Assembly: GCF_000150275.1 (NCBI RefSeq)
Contig: NW_002060956.1
Coordinates: 525,379 to 589,378, forward strand
DNA: 64,000 nt
From: Trichoplax adhaerens
Taxonomy: Eukaryota; Animalia; Placozoa
Direction: 5' to 3'
Made by a program: the position numbers and the translations under genes
The notes under the pieces: model-generated
Told to the model about the DNA's origin: nothing
The model's database searches: none
The model's input: the letters and a program-made list of their open reading frames with translations, nothing else
In this document: positions 3,001 through 40,005 of the stretch, in pieces
How the letters are laid out: each line of letters begins with the position of its first letter
How positions within the stretch are numbered: position 1 is the first letter of the stretch

Positions 3001-6000
3001 TTAATTTAATCTAATCTAATCTGCAGTACGAGTCGACATACCTGATTTGATAAAGTGAACGATAACTCCTGATAACTGTGGATCTTCGTTTAAGTTTGTA
3101 AGGTGTGGCTCTGTCTTCCTTCTCATAGCTGCATTCTCTTTTTGTGATGTCTTCTCACTGTAGTTTTGTTGAGATTCTTTGAGCTAAGAATAATTACAAA
3201 AAATTACAACAAAATTCATTTACTATCTAACGAGTTTAAGCTCTATTCGATATGCATTAAATGATACATGTTATTATTGTAATTCGAATAGTTGCGTAAC
3301 GAAATAGCTTACTTTGTCATCCCAACTAGTAGACATTTCTTTCATTGCATCCATGTTAGCTAATAACTGAGCTTTAATTTCTTCCTCCATCTCTTTCTTT
3401 AGTCGTTCTCGTTCTATTTACAATCATTAGAATATAAATACTAAGCTTAACAAATTCTATTTCTAACGGTATCTTTAAGTTTACGAGAAGCTGTTGTATT
3501 ATTTATATTTACGTATAATTGTATCAATCTATCTAAAAGTTTTGTAATTTAGTCTTACTTAATATTGTTTATTAATATTATTATTAATATTACGATAATC
3601 TTACCTCCAGGATCGATTGCTGCTCCGCCTTCCGATGGAATCATACCGCCTTCCATTGCTCTTTTTAGTTTTTCGTTTTCTTCTTTTAATTCGCGAATCA
3701 GTTTCTCCATAGGATTCTCATTGACAGTGGCTTTATTTTTAATCTTCTTCGCACGATCAGCATAACTGAAAATGTTCGTAGTAACCATATTAACTCATAA
3801 ATACATATAAAATCATAAACTAAATTATACAAACAATTCGTTCATTAATTAATATATTTTATACTTTACCGTAGTGTGCCGAGTGTTTCGTCGAAGTTAA
3901 TATCAGCAGGCGATAATGCAGCAATCATCACAGTTTTACTATTTAGTACATTATTATTAACAAATACAAAGGAAAAGAAGTATTATATGAGTTTATATTC
4001 GCCAGCGAAAATAGAATAATCACATCTTACTTCTGTTTAACACTATCTAACGCTTACCTGTTACCGCCAAGAGCGTTTTGTAATAATTTAGTCAAGACCG
4101 AATCACGATAAGGTACTTTTATCTTCTTCTTACTAGTAGATAACTCGGCAAGAGCCTAATAAATCGTTAATTACTTTAGACCAAAAATTGAAGACTCACG
4201 CTCTATATTAGTATACGAGTAAAATTATCGATAAAGTTTTATATATATACTTACAGATATAACGTTACCCAAAGCAGATAAACTCTTGTTAATTTGTGCA
4301 CCTTCTTTTAAACGATCGCCAGTAGCTCCGGTACTATCAGCTCTTTCGCTTCCTATGTAAAATTTTATAAAGATATTGTAAGTTATTATCAACTTAATTC
4401 TTCACACTCCTTACTTAGCTCATTTTTACTCTGTTACTCGTCTATATTGTTATACTTATTTACAGACTCTTACCTGCAAGATCGACTAAATTTATAACAC
4501 TAGACTTTTTAGTTTCTTCGCCAGCGTCGTTTTTCTTAATTTGATCGAATGTAATTGTGACGACAGTATGAGCTCGAGAACTCGTCGCATTCATGTTAGT
4601 TGCTGCAACAGTTCGATTTGCGGTTCCTATTACGAATATAGTAAAGTTAAGTTATCATATTTTAGATTTGATAATAATACATCACCTACATAAAGTATTT
4701 AAAATATTTAAAATATTACATACTAAGAATTTTAAATTTATAGTTGATTGTAATAATACTTGTTTACATTTATGATTATCTAACCTTCTGCGGTTCTTCT
4801 TTCTATTTCTTCGTAGCTGCCAACAGCAGTTTTCTTTAAATCTACAACGTAGAAAAGCCCTAACTTCGGATTTTCACGAACCTGAATAAAATATATAATA
4901 TATCTTATCTTTACTTGTTATTCAGTAATATAAAGAAGGAATCGCTAACAAACATAAACTAATCATAAAATAGTTATATACAATAACACGTATGTAAATG
5001 ATAATAAATTATCTATTATTTTCTATACCTTTAATCCACCCTTAGGATTGTTTCGGATTAATAAATCGCGAACTTGTTCATTGTAAATTTCCAACATACT
5101 GAACGTAACTTCATATTTCTGTCCAAATCCAATATAACAAATATCAGTAACTCGTCAGTATAGAGTGCTATTTATTATCTAAGAGTCTCGAAGTTTACAA
5201 TCTTCGATTTGTGTTACTTATTAATTAATTACTCTATATAGTAGTTTATTACAGTTAGATTTATCTATTACCGTATCTCCTTTATCTGCTTCGATTGCTT
5301 TAAATAATTCGTCACAAGTGATAGGTACGATTCCCCTTAAAGTTATGTAGTACTTATGATTAGATAGTAGATATTTATAAAATCGTACTGAGTCTATTAA
5401 ACTATTATAAACTTATAAAAGCTGACAAGATCGATATTAGAAGTTTTTTAATATCGTAAAGAAACGCGATCGTATACTATTTAGTAAGTAGATTAACTTA
5501 CTTATTTGGACCGTAACCGACCATAGAATAAGATTTACCAGACCCGGTCTGACCATAGGCGAAAAGTGAACAGTTATAACCTATATCAATACAGTAGTGT
5601 TAAAGTATAAATCAGGTTATGAGACCAGCTCCTATTTTATTATACTGTATTCTATTATAAGTATCGATTTCATAAAGTATTAATAGATCAATGACAAGGC
5701 GATGATGATAAAATATTAATATCTAGATCGTAATACCTTCGAATGCGTTATTTAAAACACCTTGTCCAAGATCGTCAAATACAGCACGTTGTGATGCATA
5801 CTTGGGGCCCGTACCGACAAGGACACCATTATCGTCTTCGATGAATCCATCATGAGACCTTTAATAAATACAATAATCAATTTTACTTTTATTACACGAA
5901 ATACGAATAAACTGTATATTAGTATATGCCAGTATTAAAGTACGAGTATATACAGTATAAGAGCTAGCATGAATTATTACTCTACTTCGTATACGCGTAT

Positions 6001-15638: not shown

Positions 15639-17862
15639 GGTTACTATTTCTTTTTCACCCTAGCATGTAAGTAGACCAATAAAATTCTTCAAGAGAAGCC
15701 GATCACTTGCGCGTGTATGATAAATCTTCCAATTCTATACCCTTATATACTCGTCGACGACGAAATGAGTATTTTACTTGATCGCTGGGGGGAGTCTTTA
15801 CGGTTAAATAGATATTTTTACTATCATACGTGTACATATGTCTGGCTGTTACGCAATTTTTCTTATATTATTTTACTACATAAAATGCGCCTTTTAAAGA
15901 AAACTCTCAGTGTAGTCTAGTTGTACATAATCTCTCATTGTATCGTCAATATAGAGCACCAATAAAAGAATAAAAAAAATGAATAGAGTAAAACTACTTG
16001 TAACTAAACTGGCTGACCTACTAAAATTCATAAAATAGAATATGCATATAGTGGAATTTACTAAGCATACCATACAGTAATGACTATACCGTTTATAAAT
16101 TCTATATGTTATATATAGAAATAATATAGAATTGGATACTATACAATACTGCCAAGTATTGACAAGCCTACAAGATATTGAATTATAACTAATGTCAATA
16201 TTACTTAAGAAACTCCGCTGATTGTATAAGACCGTTCTTTATTACTGATGAGCTACTGACGAGAGGTATAAATTAGAAAAATTTCGTTTAGTAGTCTCTG
16301 TTTGTGGTCTAGAAAGATAAAAGGCACTAGATACTGTCAATTTTGAACATGATATAGTGTAATATCATATAAGGTCATTCGCTGCTATACCTGAAATAAT
16401 CACAAGAGACCGGCATGGAGAAAGAAGCTAAGCAGTTCATATCAATTATGAAATTTTTAATATCTTATAAGCTCATTTATTATTTATTGCTAAACTAATA
16501 GCGGCTACGTACAGGGTAACATGCACTTTTCTTACAGATAAAACTGGACAGTTGACCTCAATTTTGGAAATTTCTCGGTACTTTCTAAGATCGTGCAATG
16601 TTATTGTGGAGCTAAGGACTACAAATTAGAAAAGGAGGTTGGATAGTTAATGGACTTTGTTAGGGAGTGATCCAATGTAATATCCTGTAAGATCATATTA
16701 TTATTACTGAGCGGTAATAATTAAGGGCAAACACAAAGAAGAGGTTGGTCAGCTGTTATCAATCTCGAAATTTTATTATCAATGAAGAGAATATCTAGAT
16801 TCTGTCTCTAAACTCTCCTGGATCCGAGATATTTTGCTAATGACTACTAAATAATGCAAAGGATTAAAATCAGACGTTGTATAGTGTAAAATTTTATCCT
16901 AAAGGTGGTCAATCAAATCACTGCAAAAGCAACGAAAGTAATTTAATGTTCACAGCTAGTAATAAAACTAGTACATCACAATTTCTGGTTTTAGGGTTAT
17001 GTTAGAACAGAGGCTGTGTGTACGTATACACCGACAGATTTTAGAAGACATAGTCTACGCTTAATTGAAATTGTACTGTAAAAATAATTTAATAGTTATG
17101 CAATAAAATATATGTAATAGAAAACGGGAATATATTCTTAAGTGCACTATACTACTGTAAATGATTAATTCACTCTACCTTTGCTTACTTATCATTAATT
17201 CAATTTAGAAATAATATGAAAGATAAATATAATAGTAACGGACATAAAAGTTGATAAAACAATTGTAATTTCAAATTGATGAGTTCACTGGCCTGAAGAA
17301 CTTTACCTATGATTGCTGGTAAGAAATAGTTATAATGCCGTCGACAATATACTATTCATTTGATAGTACAGTGCATCTACTACTCTGAGTAATTCACCCG
17401 TATATCAATTATTGGTTAATAATCACCATGTTAAACATGGCGCCAAATATAAATGCCATTCAAATTACAAGGTTATCACCATTTTGTATCGTTAATCACT
17501 GTACCTTAATTTTATGTATTATAGCATATCTGGTTATTAGAAACTGTTAAAATTAATGTTAAGATTGTTATTTGTTATATTTATCAATTTAGCGGAGAAA
17601 AATAGTATTGCAACATTGAATCCCTCTCATGATATCAATTTTACATGTATATGAGCTAAAGATAGATTAAAATAGATTAGCAATCTAGACAAAGAAATCG
17701 AATGATCTCTCAAATGTATTAGCTTTCATTATCAATTTTATCGTCGCTTTGCTATAGGCGAAGGAAAATAGTATAACCCTTTATTGTTGAAGATACTGAC
17801 TTTTAATGTAATAGAAGTTTATAATGTTTAACTGAAGTACTATACGAGTAAGTAGCCTTTTC

Positions 17863-34738: not shown

Positions 34739-37700
34739 TTACTTATTTGAATGGAATCTTCTAAAATAGCTTCTTGCTCTTCTAGCAGGTTTTCCTCCAT
34801 GAAACTATAGAAAATAAAGAATGTATAGATCATTCCTTAAATGGCTATAACAAAAAAGAAACAATGTCTTCTGATTGATATTAGCATATTGCAATTTTAG
34901 CATATTAACATAGAAATACTTGTTAAGACATTTGCGTATATCAATACACTATTTTACTTAATACTACAATCATTAAAACTTCAATAAACTATAGTAATCA
35001 GCGATTTCACTTCAACTCACTGTTGCATACTTCTCTCTTAAGTCAATTATCTCAAATTTTTCTCGTTCGTATGTTCCTTGCTCTTCTTGATACGACGATT
35101 CAAATGTTCCTTGATCTTCGTGATACGATCTACATTTTTCCATCGTATTCTCAGGCGATCTGAACAATGTACGAAGTGTAGAAAAAGTTTTCTGTCGTCC
35201 ATACTGTGACTTTGTCGCTTTTCCTTTTATAGTCGATACAATTACTAATAATAACGTATTCAGTAAAAAAATGTTCGAAAAGCAATAATTCAGAATAGAT
35301 TTTATATAACTCCATAATTATTTATATATTTCCTTCTATTGGCTTTCCGCTTCATTTGGTTAGGAATAAATTATTATGCTTCTGACAAAGCAAGATTAAC
35401 AAGAATATCTTAAACATAAGAGTTCGCTCACAAGTTATATTGTATTAGAAATCTTACCACACAATAAATTGTTAGCTTTATATATATGTACTACAGAAAG
35501 CGTTAAATTTATTTAATATTAAGAAGAGCTTGTTAGTGTTAGATGAAAATGCCATTAGTTTTAGTGAGTTTTATATAAATTTATGCGCATCAATAATACA
35601 GATTTTCAATATATACAACTTTAAAATACTGTATCTTCCATTAATATAACTTAAAGGCTTCATTAAATGAATTAAACTATACATGAGAAATGTTAGAAGC
35701 GACAGAAATATTCAAAAGTATAACGTATCAGAATTAGGGACTCGTGATAAGTGACAGTTTTTATTGTAAAATTTTTCCAATTAATCCTAAACGTGTATGT
35801 AAGACTTCACAGTAGATACATCAAAAGTCGCATCAGACTTACGATCATCCTAATACGATATTGATATCGTAAAGAAAGATGATTTGCATTAGTAGAGTGG
35901 TTAGAAAATATTGCAGCAGTTAGCAATTAGCGAAATCTGCGGTAGCAAAGATGTAATTTCTAGTAAGATCAATTGTCAGCGCTAAACTGTTGACATAGAC
36001 TTTTTAGGGGTTACTGGTGAGGCAGGTAAAGCAGCAGCAGCGACAAGAGCAATAGCGGTAGATGCAAAAGAAGGCGCAGCTGAAGAAGAATCTTTCTTAC
36101 GGTTTGCATTTGCTGAATGTAAATTCATAAAGGATCCTGGCCTTTTGCCGCTGTAATCCCTAATGCTAGGGTCTGCTTCTATAAAGACGAAGAAAATCAA
36201 CCATTGATGTGATAGTTAATTTTTGTGTTGAATAAAGATAACCAACTTACTGTATTTAATGATTAGCAGCTTTGCAATATCCTCATGATCATGCATTAAA
36301 GCCAAATGCAACGGTGTGTAGCCCTACGTAGAAATAACATTATGAACGTTAGCCTCCAAAAAGTAGCTCTTCCCGATAGAATTAAGCAATAGACGATATT
36401 ATACGTTGTGTAATATCAAAACATTTACCCCCTACGAGTGTTTGCGGTTGATTTTCAAAATTTAGAACGCGGTAATTATGTTAACAAAAGAGACGGATAA
36501 TAAATAATTGGTTAAAACATTTTTTAAACAGATCAAGTTAATTATGCTAAGAAATAAATTGAAATTTACATTCGATACTATAATACAGTACGTTTAAGGA
36601 GAGCTAGCACTTACATTCTAATTGAAATTGAGTTCCAGATTGTAGTAATGTTACATACGTCGTATAGATAAAAAGAAACAGTGATGGTTAAGCATAATTA
36701 TACAATACACGGAAATCTATATCATAAAACTAACAGATCTGATATTAGCATCAGCTCCATGGCCACATAGAAATCCTACCACATCGGCGTTGCCTTGCTT
36801 CGCTGCCCAATGTAATGCAGTCTATGACATTAAATGATGTGTTAAGTATTGTTTCCATCAGATCAAATTAGATCCAGCAAATCATGATTGTAGTCTATGG
36901 TATCACTTACATACTACGAAATATGCCCGGGTACGACGAATATCCAACATTAAATTAATTTAAAATAGATTTAGAAAGCATTACTCTAAATATCATCTAT
37001 CCTTATTAGTAAGTTCTAGTGTATAAGCGCTAGATATTATATAGGCTGAAAGAATATAGCTAAACAGACATTTTATATTCGAAATTGAAGATAAACGATT
37101 TGTGCTAAGAGAGGATAATTCCTATACTAATATGTTAGCAAGTAGTTGTGAAGCTTGAGCGATTCTTATTTCAACTCACCCCCTATATCGAAGATAAATA
37201 ATAAGTATGATTTACAGATATATGATCGATAGCATAACCTAATAATATTTATTTGCAACACATCATAATATATACTGTATACTGTATATAGTAAGTCTGT
37301 ACTGTATTCAATCAGGATCAAACGTACCGAAACAAAATCTCGTCTATCAAGTAAAGATTCATCTTTCTCTAAAAGCGTCTTTAATAAATGAATATTACAC
37401 ATTGATGACCATCTCATCCAGTCATGTTCCTCAGCATCCAGCTACAACATCCAATAACATCAACAGATAAAGTATGAGTTATGTTTCTATACTATATTTA
37501 CAAATACAGCTATTAAAATACAATAGAATAATCGGAGATTCATACTGTAGTGAATAATGATTTTAATTATTTTGATGCACTACTAAGGAGAAAATATCAC
37601 TTTTCAGCTAAATGTAGAATACTCAACAATCATACAGTTCTATGCATAAAATCTGTGTAATTACATGTAATAATAGATACACGCATAACAATCTTGAAAT

Positions 37701-40005
37701 CATAGTAACTCACTAACCCCGTAATAATAATCGTCTTCGACGCTGTCTGCATCTCCCTGAAACAAACGCGATTCATTACAGTAGGTTAGATTATTCTAAA
37801 TTGTAAGTTTTTAGTTAGAAATAATATATCAATAAATGCTAGAATAGCGATTTGTTCGTATAATTATTTTAAGCGCTGTGTCTTATTCATAAAAAGGTTT
37901 CAACCGTTGATGTTTTTACATCGTTATTGACAGAACTGATATTATCAATTATAAATAGTCTATAACACTTACATCATCAAGCTTGGGGGAAAATAACGCA
38001 AAAAATGGAGAACATGTACAAGAAATAGCACAAGCAATTATAAAATAAAAAGCAGCAATTTTATGTGTTAATATTTTAAAATCAACTTTCTCCTACAGTT
38101 GGTCAAAAAAAGGAATTCATATATAAAAGAAACAATATTGTTTATACTAACTTCCACTAATTCACTAGTCGGCTGTTCTTCAGAAATGGCTGTTAAATCA
38201 GCAATAGTGCTCATTTTTGTAGATCTTAATATCGACGGTGAATTGGTCATTCCGTTACCACTCGGTTTTCTTCTTAAAGACATCCTTCCTTTAGTGTCGT
38301 CGGTTGTACTCCTTCCTATAGGACCTGCAGTAGTAATACTAGATTTCTTGCGATTGGGTGTACGTACATATTCAGAACCCTAGTTTAGGTGTGTAATGAG
38401 CAATTTTCTTTTTGAATATTCATTTCTCAAATGTTACGAGAGCGCAAAGAGAGAAATTACCAATAACTAGTCAGTCATACCATTGCTATAATCATTTTAA
38501 TTTTAATTGAATATATATCGTTTTCACCTTTGATGCTCGACGCTTCGAAGTAGTGCTATAGCCTCCAATGGTTGAGACTTTGGGTGTTCTATCTAATGAA
38601 TCGTATTTACTCATTGATCCATCAGCTATCGCATCTTCCGAGATGGTTGTTAAACTTTCGTCTCTTCCAACCGGTACAGAATGAGATTTATCATAAATTT
38701 TCTTGATAGGAATATCATCATCCTCATCAATACTTGCACTGCCCGCCATCGATACTCGTTGATCGGACGAGCTATCGTCGTTTCTAGTTGAATTTGAGGT
38801 TAAAGAATGATTGTCATCACTTTCATCGTCATTGTAAACAGTGGCAGGTGCTGCAGTAGTGGTCCCTTCATATTCTTTGTTTCTGAATTCGGGCTTCAAA
38901 ACGAAGTAGTTGATTTGCTTGATATTAAAGTATTTAGAAAAGAGCTCAAATTAGTCCACTTTTTATGTTATTATATCGTTATGGACATCGTGTAAGGTAT
39001 GCTAGAGTGCTCGCTCAAATGGGAATATTGATTATGCAATTAAAAACATTTACGCGTACACCGTATAATCTATTTTTGTTTGATTTAATTGATACTTTCA
39101 TCAAGATGGCAGTCAGCAATTTCGCACTGTATTAGTGGTATACGCCAAGTGTTATCAAGATTTCTGTGAAAAAGAGTTGATGCAAGGTGTTCTATTCTTA
39201 CTCATTCTGTATGCTTGTCCAGTAGAGCAGAGATTTAGCACTACACCAGCAATCCAGTTTTAATATACTCGTAAACACTTTAACACGATTGCGTATCTAA
39301 GAGTATCACTACTAAGAGTAAGATAGCAGCATCACCAGGTCGACAGAACCTTTCCCGAACCCTAATTTATTTCATTTCAAACGAGTTCATGCTAATCTAT
39401 CGTACGATACAATCTAGACAAAAATAGCGAATCCATCCATGATGGCTTGTAAAACCAGTGTTTATTGATACTATATGATGTTATTAGGGATCAAAGTGCC
39501 TATCTACTGAATATGGCAAGTTTTTACCATGTAAGATAACGAAATATTGTCAAATTACTGCTAAACTTATTCATCGTTTTCTCGATTATTCCTGTCGATA
39601 TTCTTTATTCCAGTACAGTACGTAGATCAACAACGCTATCCTAGTGACTAAAATCAATACTAGGATATTGCTGATTTGGAAGAGCACACGTAAATTATAG
39701 GCTTATACTATTAATGCATAACAAGCCATTGTAAAACGAATTGCTTTTGATAGTCTACTTACATCAATTTTCTCAATAGTTGTTAAAGCGTTTAATCCGT
39801 GACGGAAATCGTCCCGATGTTCTATGTAAAATTAGGATATTATCAGTTTTATGACAATAACATGTGATAGAGTATTCGTTGATGATATCATACCTCGAAT
39901 AGACTGCTTGAAATGCTTACTAAATACTTCATCTTTGACCCTAAAGTTATGCTCAACAAAGTACTGCTTAATTGCCTCTCTGACTTCTTGACTTGTGCTA
40001 GCCAT
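34739..40005 (-). CDS. SOWAH: SOWAH (sosondowah)-family ankyrin-repeat protein, multi-exon with microexons
   Basis: N-terminal MASTSQEVREAIKQYFVEHNFRVKDEVFSKHFK..DDFRHGLNALTT..YFVLK resembles the SOWAH N-terminal domain. Ankyrin core LDAEEHDWMR..RRDFVS-G-Y-TALHWAAKQG..ANIRS-N-G-GYTPLHLALMHDH..KYKADPSIRDYSGKRP. 3' exons 35021-35244 and 34739-34804 are less certain. Confidence 0.85.
36429..36431 (-). CDS. 3-nt microexon GGG (Gly) of SOWAH gene
   Basis: Minus strand cactcgtag|GGG|gtaaat; completes RS-N-G-GYTPLH. Confidence 0.75.
36615..36617 (-). CDS. 3-nt microexon AAT (Asn) of SOWAH gene
   Basis: Minus strand tttcaattag|AAT|gtaagt. Confidence 0.75.
36911..36913 (-). CDS. 3-nt microexon TAT (Tyr) of SOWAH gene
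   Basis: Minus strand atttcgtag|TAT|gtaagt; completes DFVS-G-Y-TALHW. Confidence 0.78.
37180..37182 (-). CDS. 3-nt microexon GGG (Gly) of SOWAH gene
   Basis: Minus strand tcttcgatatag|GGG|gtgagt. Confidence 0.78.
37973..37981 (-). CDS. 9-nt microexon (LDD) of SOWAH gene
   Basis: Minus strand ttttcccccaag|CTTGATGAT|gtaagt, between phase-0 exons. Confidence 0.6.

Follow-up and report, generated by a model that had tools for sequence, protein, structure and literature searches.

Exons of a single codon, 3 nucleotides (nt) in length, have been known since the work on Ncam and TnT, and further cases are described for cytohesin-1, homothorax, MAP4K5 and RPS24. In animals (mouse Ncam, Drosophila TnT and homothorax, human cytohesin-1, MAP4K5 and RPS24), such exons are frequently conserved, and aligners and annotators tend to overlook them. 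The exons occur singly or beside longer microexons, as in RPS24 with exons of 3, 18, and 22 bp, and most of them are alternatively spliced. In this study, we analyze an ankyrin-repeat gene of the placozoan Trichoplax adhaerens, encoded on the minus strand of a 64,000-nt stretch of DNA (contig NW_002060956.1, positions 525,379 to 589,378). This whole stretch is referred to as the window, and positions are counted from its first letter. As in the described animal cases, one-codon exons lie between canonical introns. Unlike in these cases, two 3-nt exons are adjacent to each other, the arrangement occurs twice in one gene, the exons seem to be included constitutively, and the host is a non-bilaterian animal. 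We consider it very probable that this gene has 14 exons and carries four genuine 3-nt internal coding exons in its main mRNA, with the surrounding introns removed stepwise by intron definition. Full-text literature searches returned no report of a tandem 3+3-nt exon pair, and the placozoan microexon literature that was found consists only of a paper on mitochondrial cox1.

Constitutive microexons of 1-15 nt are known from plants, where the flanking introns are removed consecutively rather than simultaneously and are often detained (Yu et al., 2022; PMC8831610). Exons of 1 nt exist in plants, and the adjacent plant microexons that have been reported measure 5 and 12 nt (PMC8831610). The placozoan exons resemble plant microexons in being coding and apparently constitutive, in being embedded in conserved protein motifs, in their long conservation and in their strong GTRAGT donors (Yu et al., 2022; PMC8831610). 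Plant microexons are also missing from annotations and leave retained intermediates, as is the case for the introns I2 and I4 described below (PMC8831610). However, the comparison reaches into another kingdom, and the detained intron was measured on fractionated RNA in plants, whereas it is deduced from three contigs here. The bilaterian neural programme of SRRM3/4 and their eMIC domain shares the exon size class of 3-27 nt. That programme is tissue-regulated and uses a UGC next to the acceptor together with the eMIC domain, whereas in the placozoan gene we found neither a UGC in the 25 nt upstream of the acceptors, nor a match to SRRM_C in the genome, nor a skipped form in the transcript contigs. 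Recursive (ratchet-point) splicing in Drosophila and vertebrates juxtaposes an acceptor and a following donor, proceeds stepwise with a 5' splice site that becomes available once the first step is complete, leaves a zero-length exon and operates in very long introns. The likeness to recursive splicing is confined to the juxtaposed acceptor and donor and the stepwise logic; here, three bases are kept per site and the introns span 89-266 nt. The four 3-nt exons are verified, unusual and conserved, yet spliced by known rules, and represent extreme but canonical microexon splicing. By size they belong to the microexons, defined as internal exons of at most 30 nt between canonical introns.

The microexons are arranged in two consecutive pairs between the larger exons A, B, and C, all on the minus strand. 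Exon A (37328-37441, 114 nt, phase 0) encodes LDAEEHDW...DRRDFVS, is delimited by the joints 37441 to 37718 and 36821 to 37327, and ends with ...GATTTTGTTTCG at 37328, its last codon being TCG. It is followed by intron I1 (37183-37327, 145 nt), microexon 1 (37180-37182, GGG for Gly, AG/GGG/GTGAGT), intron I2 (36914-37179, 266 nt), which separates the members of the first pair, microexon 2 (36911-36913, TAT for Tyr, AG/TAT/GTAAGT) and intron I3 (36822-36910, 89 nt). Exon B (36735-36821, 87 nt, TALHWAAKQGNADVVGFLCGHGADANIRS) encodes TALHW...NIRS and is supported by an Ank profile match and by contig pieces. Downstream of it lie intron I4 (36618-36734, 117 nt), microexon 3 (36615-36617, AAT for Asn, AG/AAT/GTAAGT), intron I5 (36432-36614, 183 nt), which separates the second pair and is absent from all contigs examined, microexon 4 (36429-36431, GGG for Gly, AG/GGG/GTAAAT) and intron I6 (36324-36428, 105 nt), whose bounds are read from the sequence. 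Exon C (36251-36323, 73 nt, GYTPLHLALMHDHEDIAKLLIIKY), starting with GYTPLH, also has an Ank match and is connected to the last coding exon by the joint 36178 to 36251 in all four transcript runs. All six introns are GT-AG introns and all are in phase 0. Microexons 1, 2, and 3 have GTRAGT donors, while exons A and B use the weaker donors GTACGT and GTTAGT. The 1004-nt region harboring the microexons is single copy in the genome, and exon A has no paralogue. An earlier note on this DNA, made from the letters alone, had proposed the four AG/NNN/GT units, the exon ends, the intron lengths and the strong and weak donors, and all of these are found on the minus strand at the positions it gave.

The transcript evidence consists of assembled contigs from four runs (X6, X7, X9, and X19) that belong to four different studies. 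X9 is recorded as RNA, and X6, X7, and X19 were labelled RNA by guess; the contigs of the latter three lack the introns they span and are hence cDNA by content. At the joint between exon A and exon B (36821 to 37327), all four runs carry the plus-strand letters ATACC, which is GGTAT on the gene strand, with one further G absorbed at 37327. The mRNA across this joint reads TCG-GGG-TAT-ACT in each of the runs. Likewise, the joint between exon B and exon C (36324 to 36735) carries CCATT on the plus strand, i.e., AATGG, with one G absorbed at 36324, and the mRNA reads TCT-AAT-GGG-GGC (four of four runs). The two consecutive pairs of single-codon exons that the earlier note had predicted, with their GGG-TAT and AAT-GGG junctions, are therefore used in the mRNA. 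A direct junction of exon A with exon B (TCG-ACT) or of exon B with exon C (TCT-GGC), the outcome that would have spoken against the prediction, is absent from the contigs of the four runs, in which rare variants could be hidden.

At fully spliced joints the aligner reports only the letters lying between the two exons, and one G per joint is ambiguous. These letters might thus derive from non-canonical splice sites, from one 6-nt exon elsewhere or from another allele or a paralogue whose large exons already include the six bases. Partly spliced contigs contradict such a source for three of the four microexons, as they run contiguously from the intron through the first GGG, TAT, and AAT, with canonical joints on the opposite side, and thereby fix the genomic context of these three exons. 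Record 12 of X7 is unbroken from 36911 to 37181 and contains TAT, I2, and GGG, while I1 and I3 have been removed by canonical joints (37181 to 37327, skipping 145 nt with the cut placed at +1, and 36821 to 36911, skipping 89 nt). In record 7 of X6, the sequence is unbroken from 36793 to 37181 and continues with exon A, so that I1 is removed and both I2 and I3 are kept. Record 1 of X19 passes from exon D through exon C, GGG, and AAT into I4, of which it covers 44 nt (joint 36324 to 36614 plus C); I5 and I6 are removed and the 3' part of I4 is retained. Furthermore, exon C cannot be extended upstream in frame without meeting a stop codon, and reading on from exon A or exon B into the adjoining intron gives other residues. 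The single-copy state of the region speaks against a paralogue as the donor of the six bases, and the conservation of the four units in two other lineages speaks against any source other than 3-nt exons. Taken with these data, an origin of the six bases outside the four microexons is highly improbable.

Unspliced contigs of low depth (3-12) cover introns of the gene at 37727-38181 and 38888-39494 in X9, X6, and X7. The runs thus contain some pre-mRNA or genomic DNA, and hence partly spliced intermediates become visible. The runs labelled organism B and C, and some of those labelled A, show single-base differences to the window at 37367, 37445, 37671, 37825, 37862, 37959, 38837, 38850, and 40012. 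As these differences amount to about 1% or less, the runs stem from strains or very close relatives. All microexons and their splice sites are free of such differences.

Inclusion of the four microexons looks constitutive. Since all four are in phase 0 and frame-neutral, every combination of skipped microexons would keep the reading frame, and alternative splicing is common among the 3-nt exons of animals (cytohesin-1, homothorax, Drosophila TnT, and RPS24). The microexons could accordingly be real but alternatively spliced, with skipping that depends on cell type or state and tunes the length of the ankyrin hairpin and loop, which is the frame-neutral switch considered in the earlier note. 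No contig of the four runs from four studies contains a skipped junction, although contigs can hide rare variants. The position of the microexon residues in the ankyrin fold also argues against such a switch. Exon B matches the Pfam Ank profile (PF00023) with an E-value of 2.3e-8 over profile positions 4-31, and exon C matches Ank with an E-value of 4.2e-7 over positions 2-22. These matches place the microexon residues at position 2, the conserved Gly, and positions 3 and 33 of one repeat and at position 1 of the next. The residues supplied are G-Y before TALHW and N-G before GYTPLH, as the earlier note had proposed and as both the mRNA letters and the profile positions confirm. Based on arithmetic with the exon-wise Pfam matches, G-Y-TALH and G-Y-TPLH are spaced by 33 residues with the microexons and by 31 without them. 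Skipping would thus remove core ankyrin positions and break the 33-residue register, and we regard regulated skipping as unlikely.

To compare the locus with other lineages, the open frame of the largest exon served as the query of a protein search. This search returned three fragment proteins, whose contigs are orthologous genomic loci. Two further placozoan-like lineages are represented, one by three Logan assemblies (L003-L005) and one by two ENA metagenome assemblies (L006 and L007). Amino-acid identity to the window is 60% for exon 3, 74-78% for exon 4, 89-92% for exon A, and 79-81% for exon B. L003 contains AG/GGG/GT, AG/TAT/GT, AG/AAT/GT, and AG/GGG/GTAAAT in the same order as the window, and all four microexons are retained in L003-L005. 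In L006 and L007 the first pair is present, and their contigs then end in exon B. The four codons expected in orthologues by the earlier note are hence present in one lineage and the first two of them in the other. The donor of exon A varies across the three lineages (GTACGT, GTAGGT, and GTATGT).

The intron alignments are diverged and rich in gaps, with 41-49% of the columns invariant, and their longest invariant runs are the microexons with their splice sites (17, 8, 12, and 11 nt). The 17-nt run TTTCGTAGTATGTAAGT around TAT is the longest invariant run of alignment A1, which covers three lineages. Around the first GGG, the 8 nt TAGGGGGT are conserved in L003 and L006. The 12-nt island TAGGGGGTAAAT around the second GGG and the 11 nt AGAATGTAAGT around AAT are conserved in L003. 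For comparison, the flanking exons show 80-84% nucleotide identity, and the codon is unchanged at about 64% of the conserved residues. Constraint at the codon level was considered and rejected: the microexon codons are all identical across the lineages, yet with 0.64^4 ~ 0.17 this identity is not significant by itself. L003 contains two additional AG-NNN-GT units, namely CTC at 2442-2444 with the donor GTTGTC and ATA at 2954-2956 with the donor GTATAA. Owing to their poor donors and the lack of a counterpart in the window, these are probably unused decoys.

The two intervals between exons A and B and between exons B and C contain the four microexon units as AG-NNN-GT heptamers and no others. 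When either interval is shuffled, about 0.3% of the shuffled sequences contain an ordered pair with the correct residues. The genome assembly comprises 1414 contigs with a total of 105,631,681 bases (105.6 Mb), and a count over both strands gives 1503 occurrences of TAGNNNGTRAGT, compared with 1972 occurrences of the reversed control. At this genomic density about 0.007 occurrences are expected in the 917 nt of the two intervals, and three are observed, all on the correct strand and correctly ordered. The pattern YYYYYNYAGNNNGTRAGT is found 58 times in the genome and its reversed control 74 times; it is too strict to match the four real microexons. A genome-wide class of 3-nt exons was therefore not supported by motif counts, which show no excess over the reversed control in a test of little power. 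It follows that further cases cannot be revealed by the motif alone. The locus looks exceptional in the genome and not typical of it. Within the window, AG-NNN-GTRAGT units with an acceptor-like tract also occur at 15664-15666 on the plus strand (...ctttttcaccctag/CAT/gtaagt) and at 4200-4202 on the minus strand (...tactcgtatactaatatag/AGC/gtgagt). Judging from their letters, these two units could be ordinary exon ends or further candidate 3-nt exons.

The most likely mechanism for the splicing of this region is a stepwise one, in which each short intron would be recognized as a unit by intron definition. Simultaneous binding of an acceptor and a donor that are 3 nt apart is sterically excluded, as has been established in other systems. 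The acceptor and the donor of a microexon probably cannot be bound at once, and thus removal should be stepwise. The microexon would first be ligated to the neighboring exon of normal size, which would give the remaining intron an ordinary exon context, and this remaining intron would be spliced last. For the first pair, the intermediates suggest that I1 is removed first, followed by I3, with I2 last. For the second pair, I5 and I6 appear to be removed before I4, as judged from the single intermediate that still holds I4. The recognition signals may consist of the strong intronic halves of the donors, which read GTRAGT in three microexons out of four, and the conserved islands of acceptor, microexon, and donor. 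An enhancer system of the eMIC or SRRM3/4 type would not be involved.

Exonic enhancers cannot fit into a 3-nt exon, and the acceptor tracts are poor in pyrimidines (0.6-0.7 for the three that were scored, and purine-rich by eye upstream of the second GGG). Together with the conservation around TAT, which reaches 8 nt upstream of the codon, these features would be expected if inclusion required a dedicated trans-acting activator of placozoan microexons, i.e., a functional analogue of SRRM3/4 and the eMIC domain. However, none of the four acceptors has a UGC motif in the 25 nt upstream of it, and the conserved islands barely exceed the splice-site consensus. A six-frame search of the whole genome gave no match to SRRM_C (PF15230) at E<=1, which is weak evidence, as a short domain interrupted by introns might escape such a search. 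These two negative searches agree with the view of the earlier note that the gene lies outside the bilaterian SRRM3/4 programme. Moreover, no conserved RNA structure was found: the fold of I2 is no better than that of shuffled sequences (z +1.37), and the consensus structure of I2 over three lineages is weak at -7.35 kcal/mol. A dedicated activator is thus an improbable requirement. The same fold and consensus values led us to reject an RNA structure that brings the two microexons into proximity. An origin by insertion of a repeat or introner or by tandem duplication was rejected as well, since the region is single copy and the six introns are mutually dissimilar (z at most 2.8 relative to shuffles). 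The undescribed mechanism invoked by the earlier note is not needed either, because six canonical short GT-AG introns and stepwise removal, as for the constitutive microexons of plants (PMC8831610), suffice.

Several observations weigh against four 3-nt exons spliced in this stepwise manner. The second GGG (36429-36431) is present in the mRNA of all four runs and never appears in genomic context in a partly spliced contig; its position follows from the lack of any other unassigned AG-NNN-GT unit in the interval and from its conservation. The data are assembled contigs instead of raw reads, and rare skipped isoforms would be lost from them. For three of the four runs, the status as RNA is a guessed label, though their contigs lack introns. 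The order of removal rests on three intermediate contigs and differs between the two pairs, which gives no single rule. Finally, the steric exclusion is a step borrowed from other systems.

The I2-retaining record 12 of X7 has a word depth of 41.7, compared with 48.1 for the spliced form. In a further-reaching interpretation, tandem one-codon exons would impose an obligatory, ordered, and slow splicing pathway in which the intron next to or between the microexons would be detained and would gate the mRNA output of the gene. Alternatively, they would mark a local gain of introns, with six phase-0 introns within 12 coding bases that would have been acquired before the sampled placozoan lineages split. 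We put forward either proposal tentatively and think it rather doubtful.

The coding sequence of the whole gene extends from 40005 to 35982 on the minus strand and comprises 14 exons and 1320 nt, corresponding to about 439 amino acids. It starts with the ATG at 40005 and ends with a TAG stop codon at 35982, at the end of the last coding exon (35982-36178), which is defined by contig joints and sequence. The upstream coding exons (40005-39894, 39821-39763, 38917-38528, and 38379-38152) are based on contig joints, translations, and orthologous matches. They are followed by a 9-nt microexon, CTTGATGAT (LDD), at 37973-37981, as the joint 37756 to 38152 carries ATCATCAAG on the plus strand in X6, X7, and X9. 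The site AG/CTTGATGAT/GT is unique in the window. Downstream of the 9-nt microexon lies a 39-nt exon (GDADSVEDDYYYG) at 37718-37756, which is supported by contig joints, its sequence, and an orthologue match. Neither L003 nor L006, which represent the two other lineages, has the 9-nt microexon at the corresponding alignment position; from the genomic alignment, exon 4 seems to be joined directly to the 39-nt exon in both. Contigs of X6 and X7 connect two 20-nt pieces (38433-38452 and 39393-39413) across 940 nt with the non-canonical ends GA..GC, and these contigs extend for 131-255 nt into sequence outside the stretch. This connection is probably a chance match from the transcript of another locus.

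Exon-wise Pfam scans identified Ank in exons B and C only and gave no match for exon 1, exon A, or exon 4. The gene may be a SOWAH gene, as the earlier note named it; the note also describes vertebrate SOWAH genes as intronless. Its predicted layout of a short N-terminal domain, a middle part rich in Ser and Asp and C-terminal ankyrin repeats fits a SOWAH-like protein. A search of a representative protein library with exon A returned spurious translated repeats and one generic ankyrin protein, with no match to the gene itself and no SOWAH homologue, and is uninformative with respect to family identity and annotated models.

Gene predictors would probably miss these four 3-nt exons. If a protein model connects the large exons to each other, four core ankyrin residues would be missing from it, and similar losses elsewhere would pass unnoticed if RNA evidence at the level of junctions is not consulted. 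The gene indicates that the canonical spliceosome can faithfully splice introns whose sites abut three exonic bases, twice in one gene and with no detectable regulator of the eMIC type, and the arrangement is retained across divergent placozoan lineages. With about 1 kb, the region is a compact natural substrate for studies of intron definition, of the steric limits between splice sites and of the order of splicing. If the detained-intron or intron-gain proposal is true, the gene would offer a natural case in which to examine how short an exon can be under pure intron definition in an animal without eMIC.

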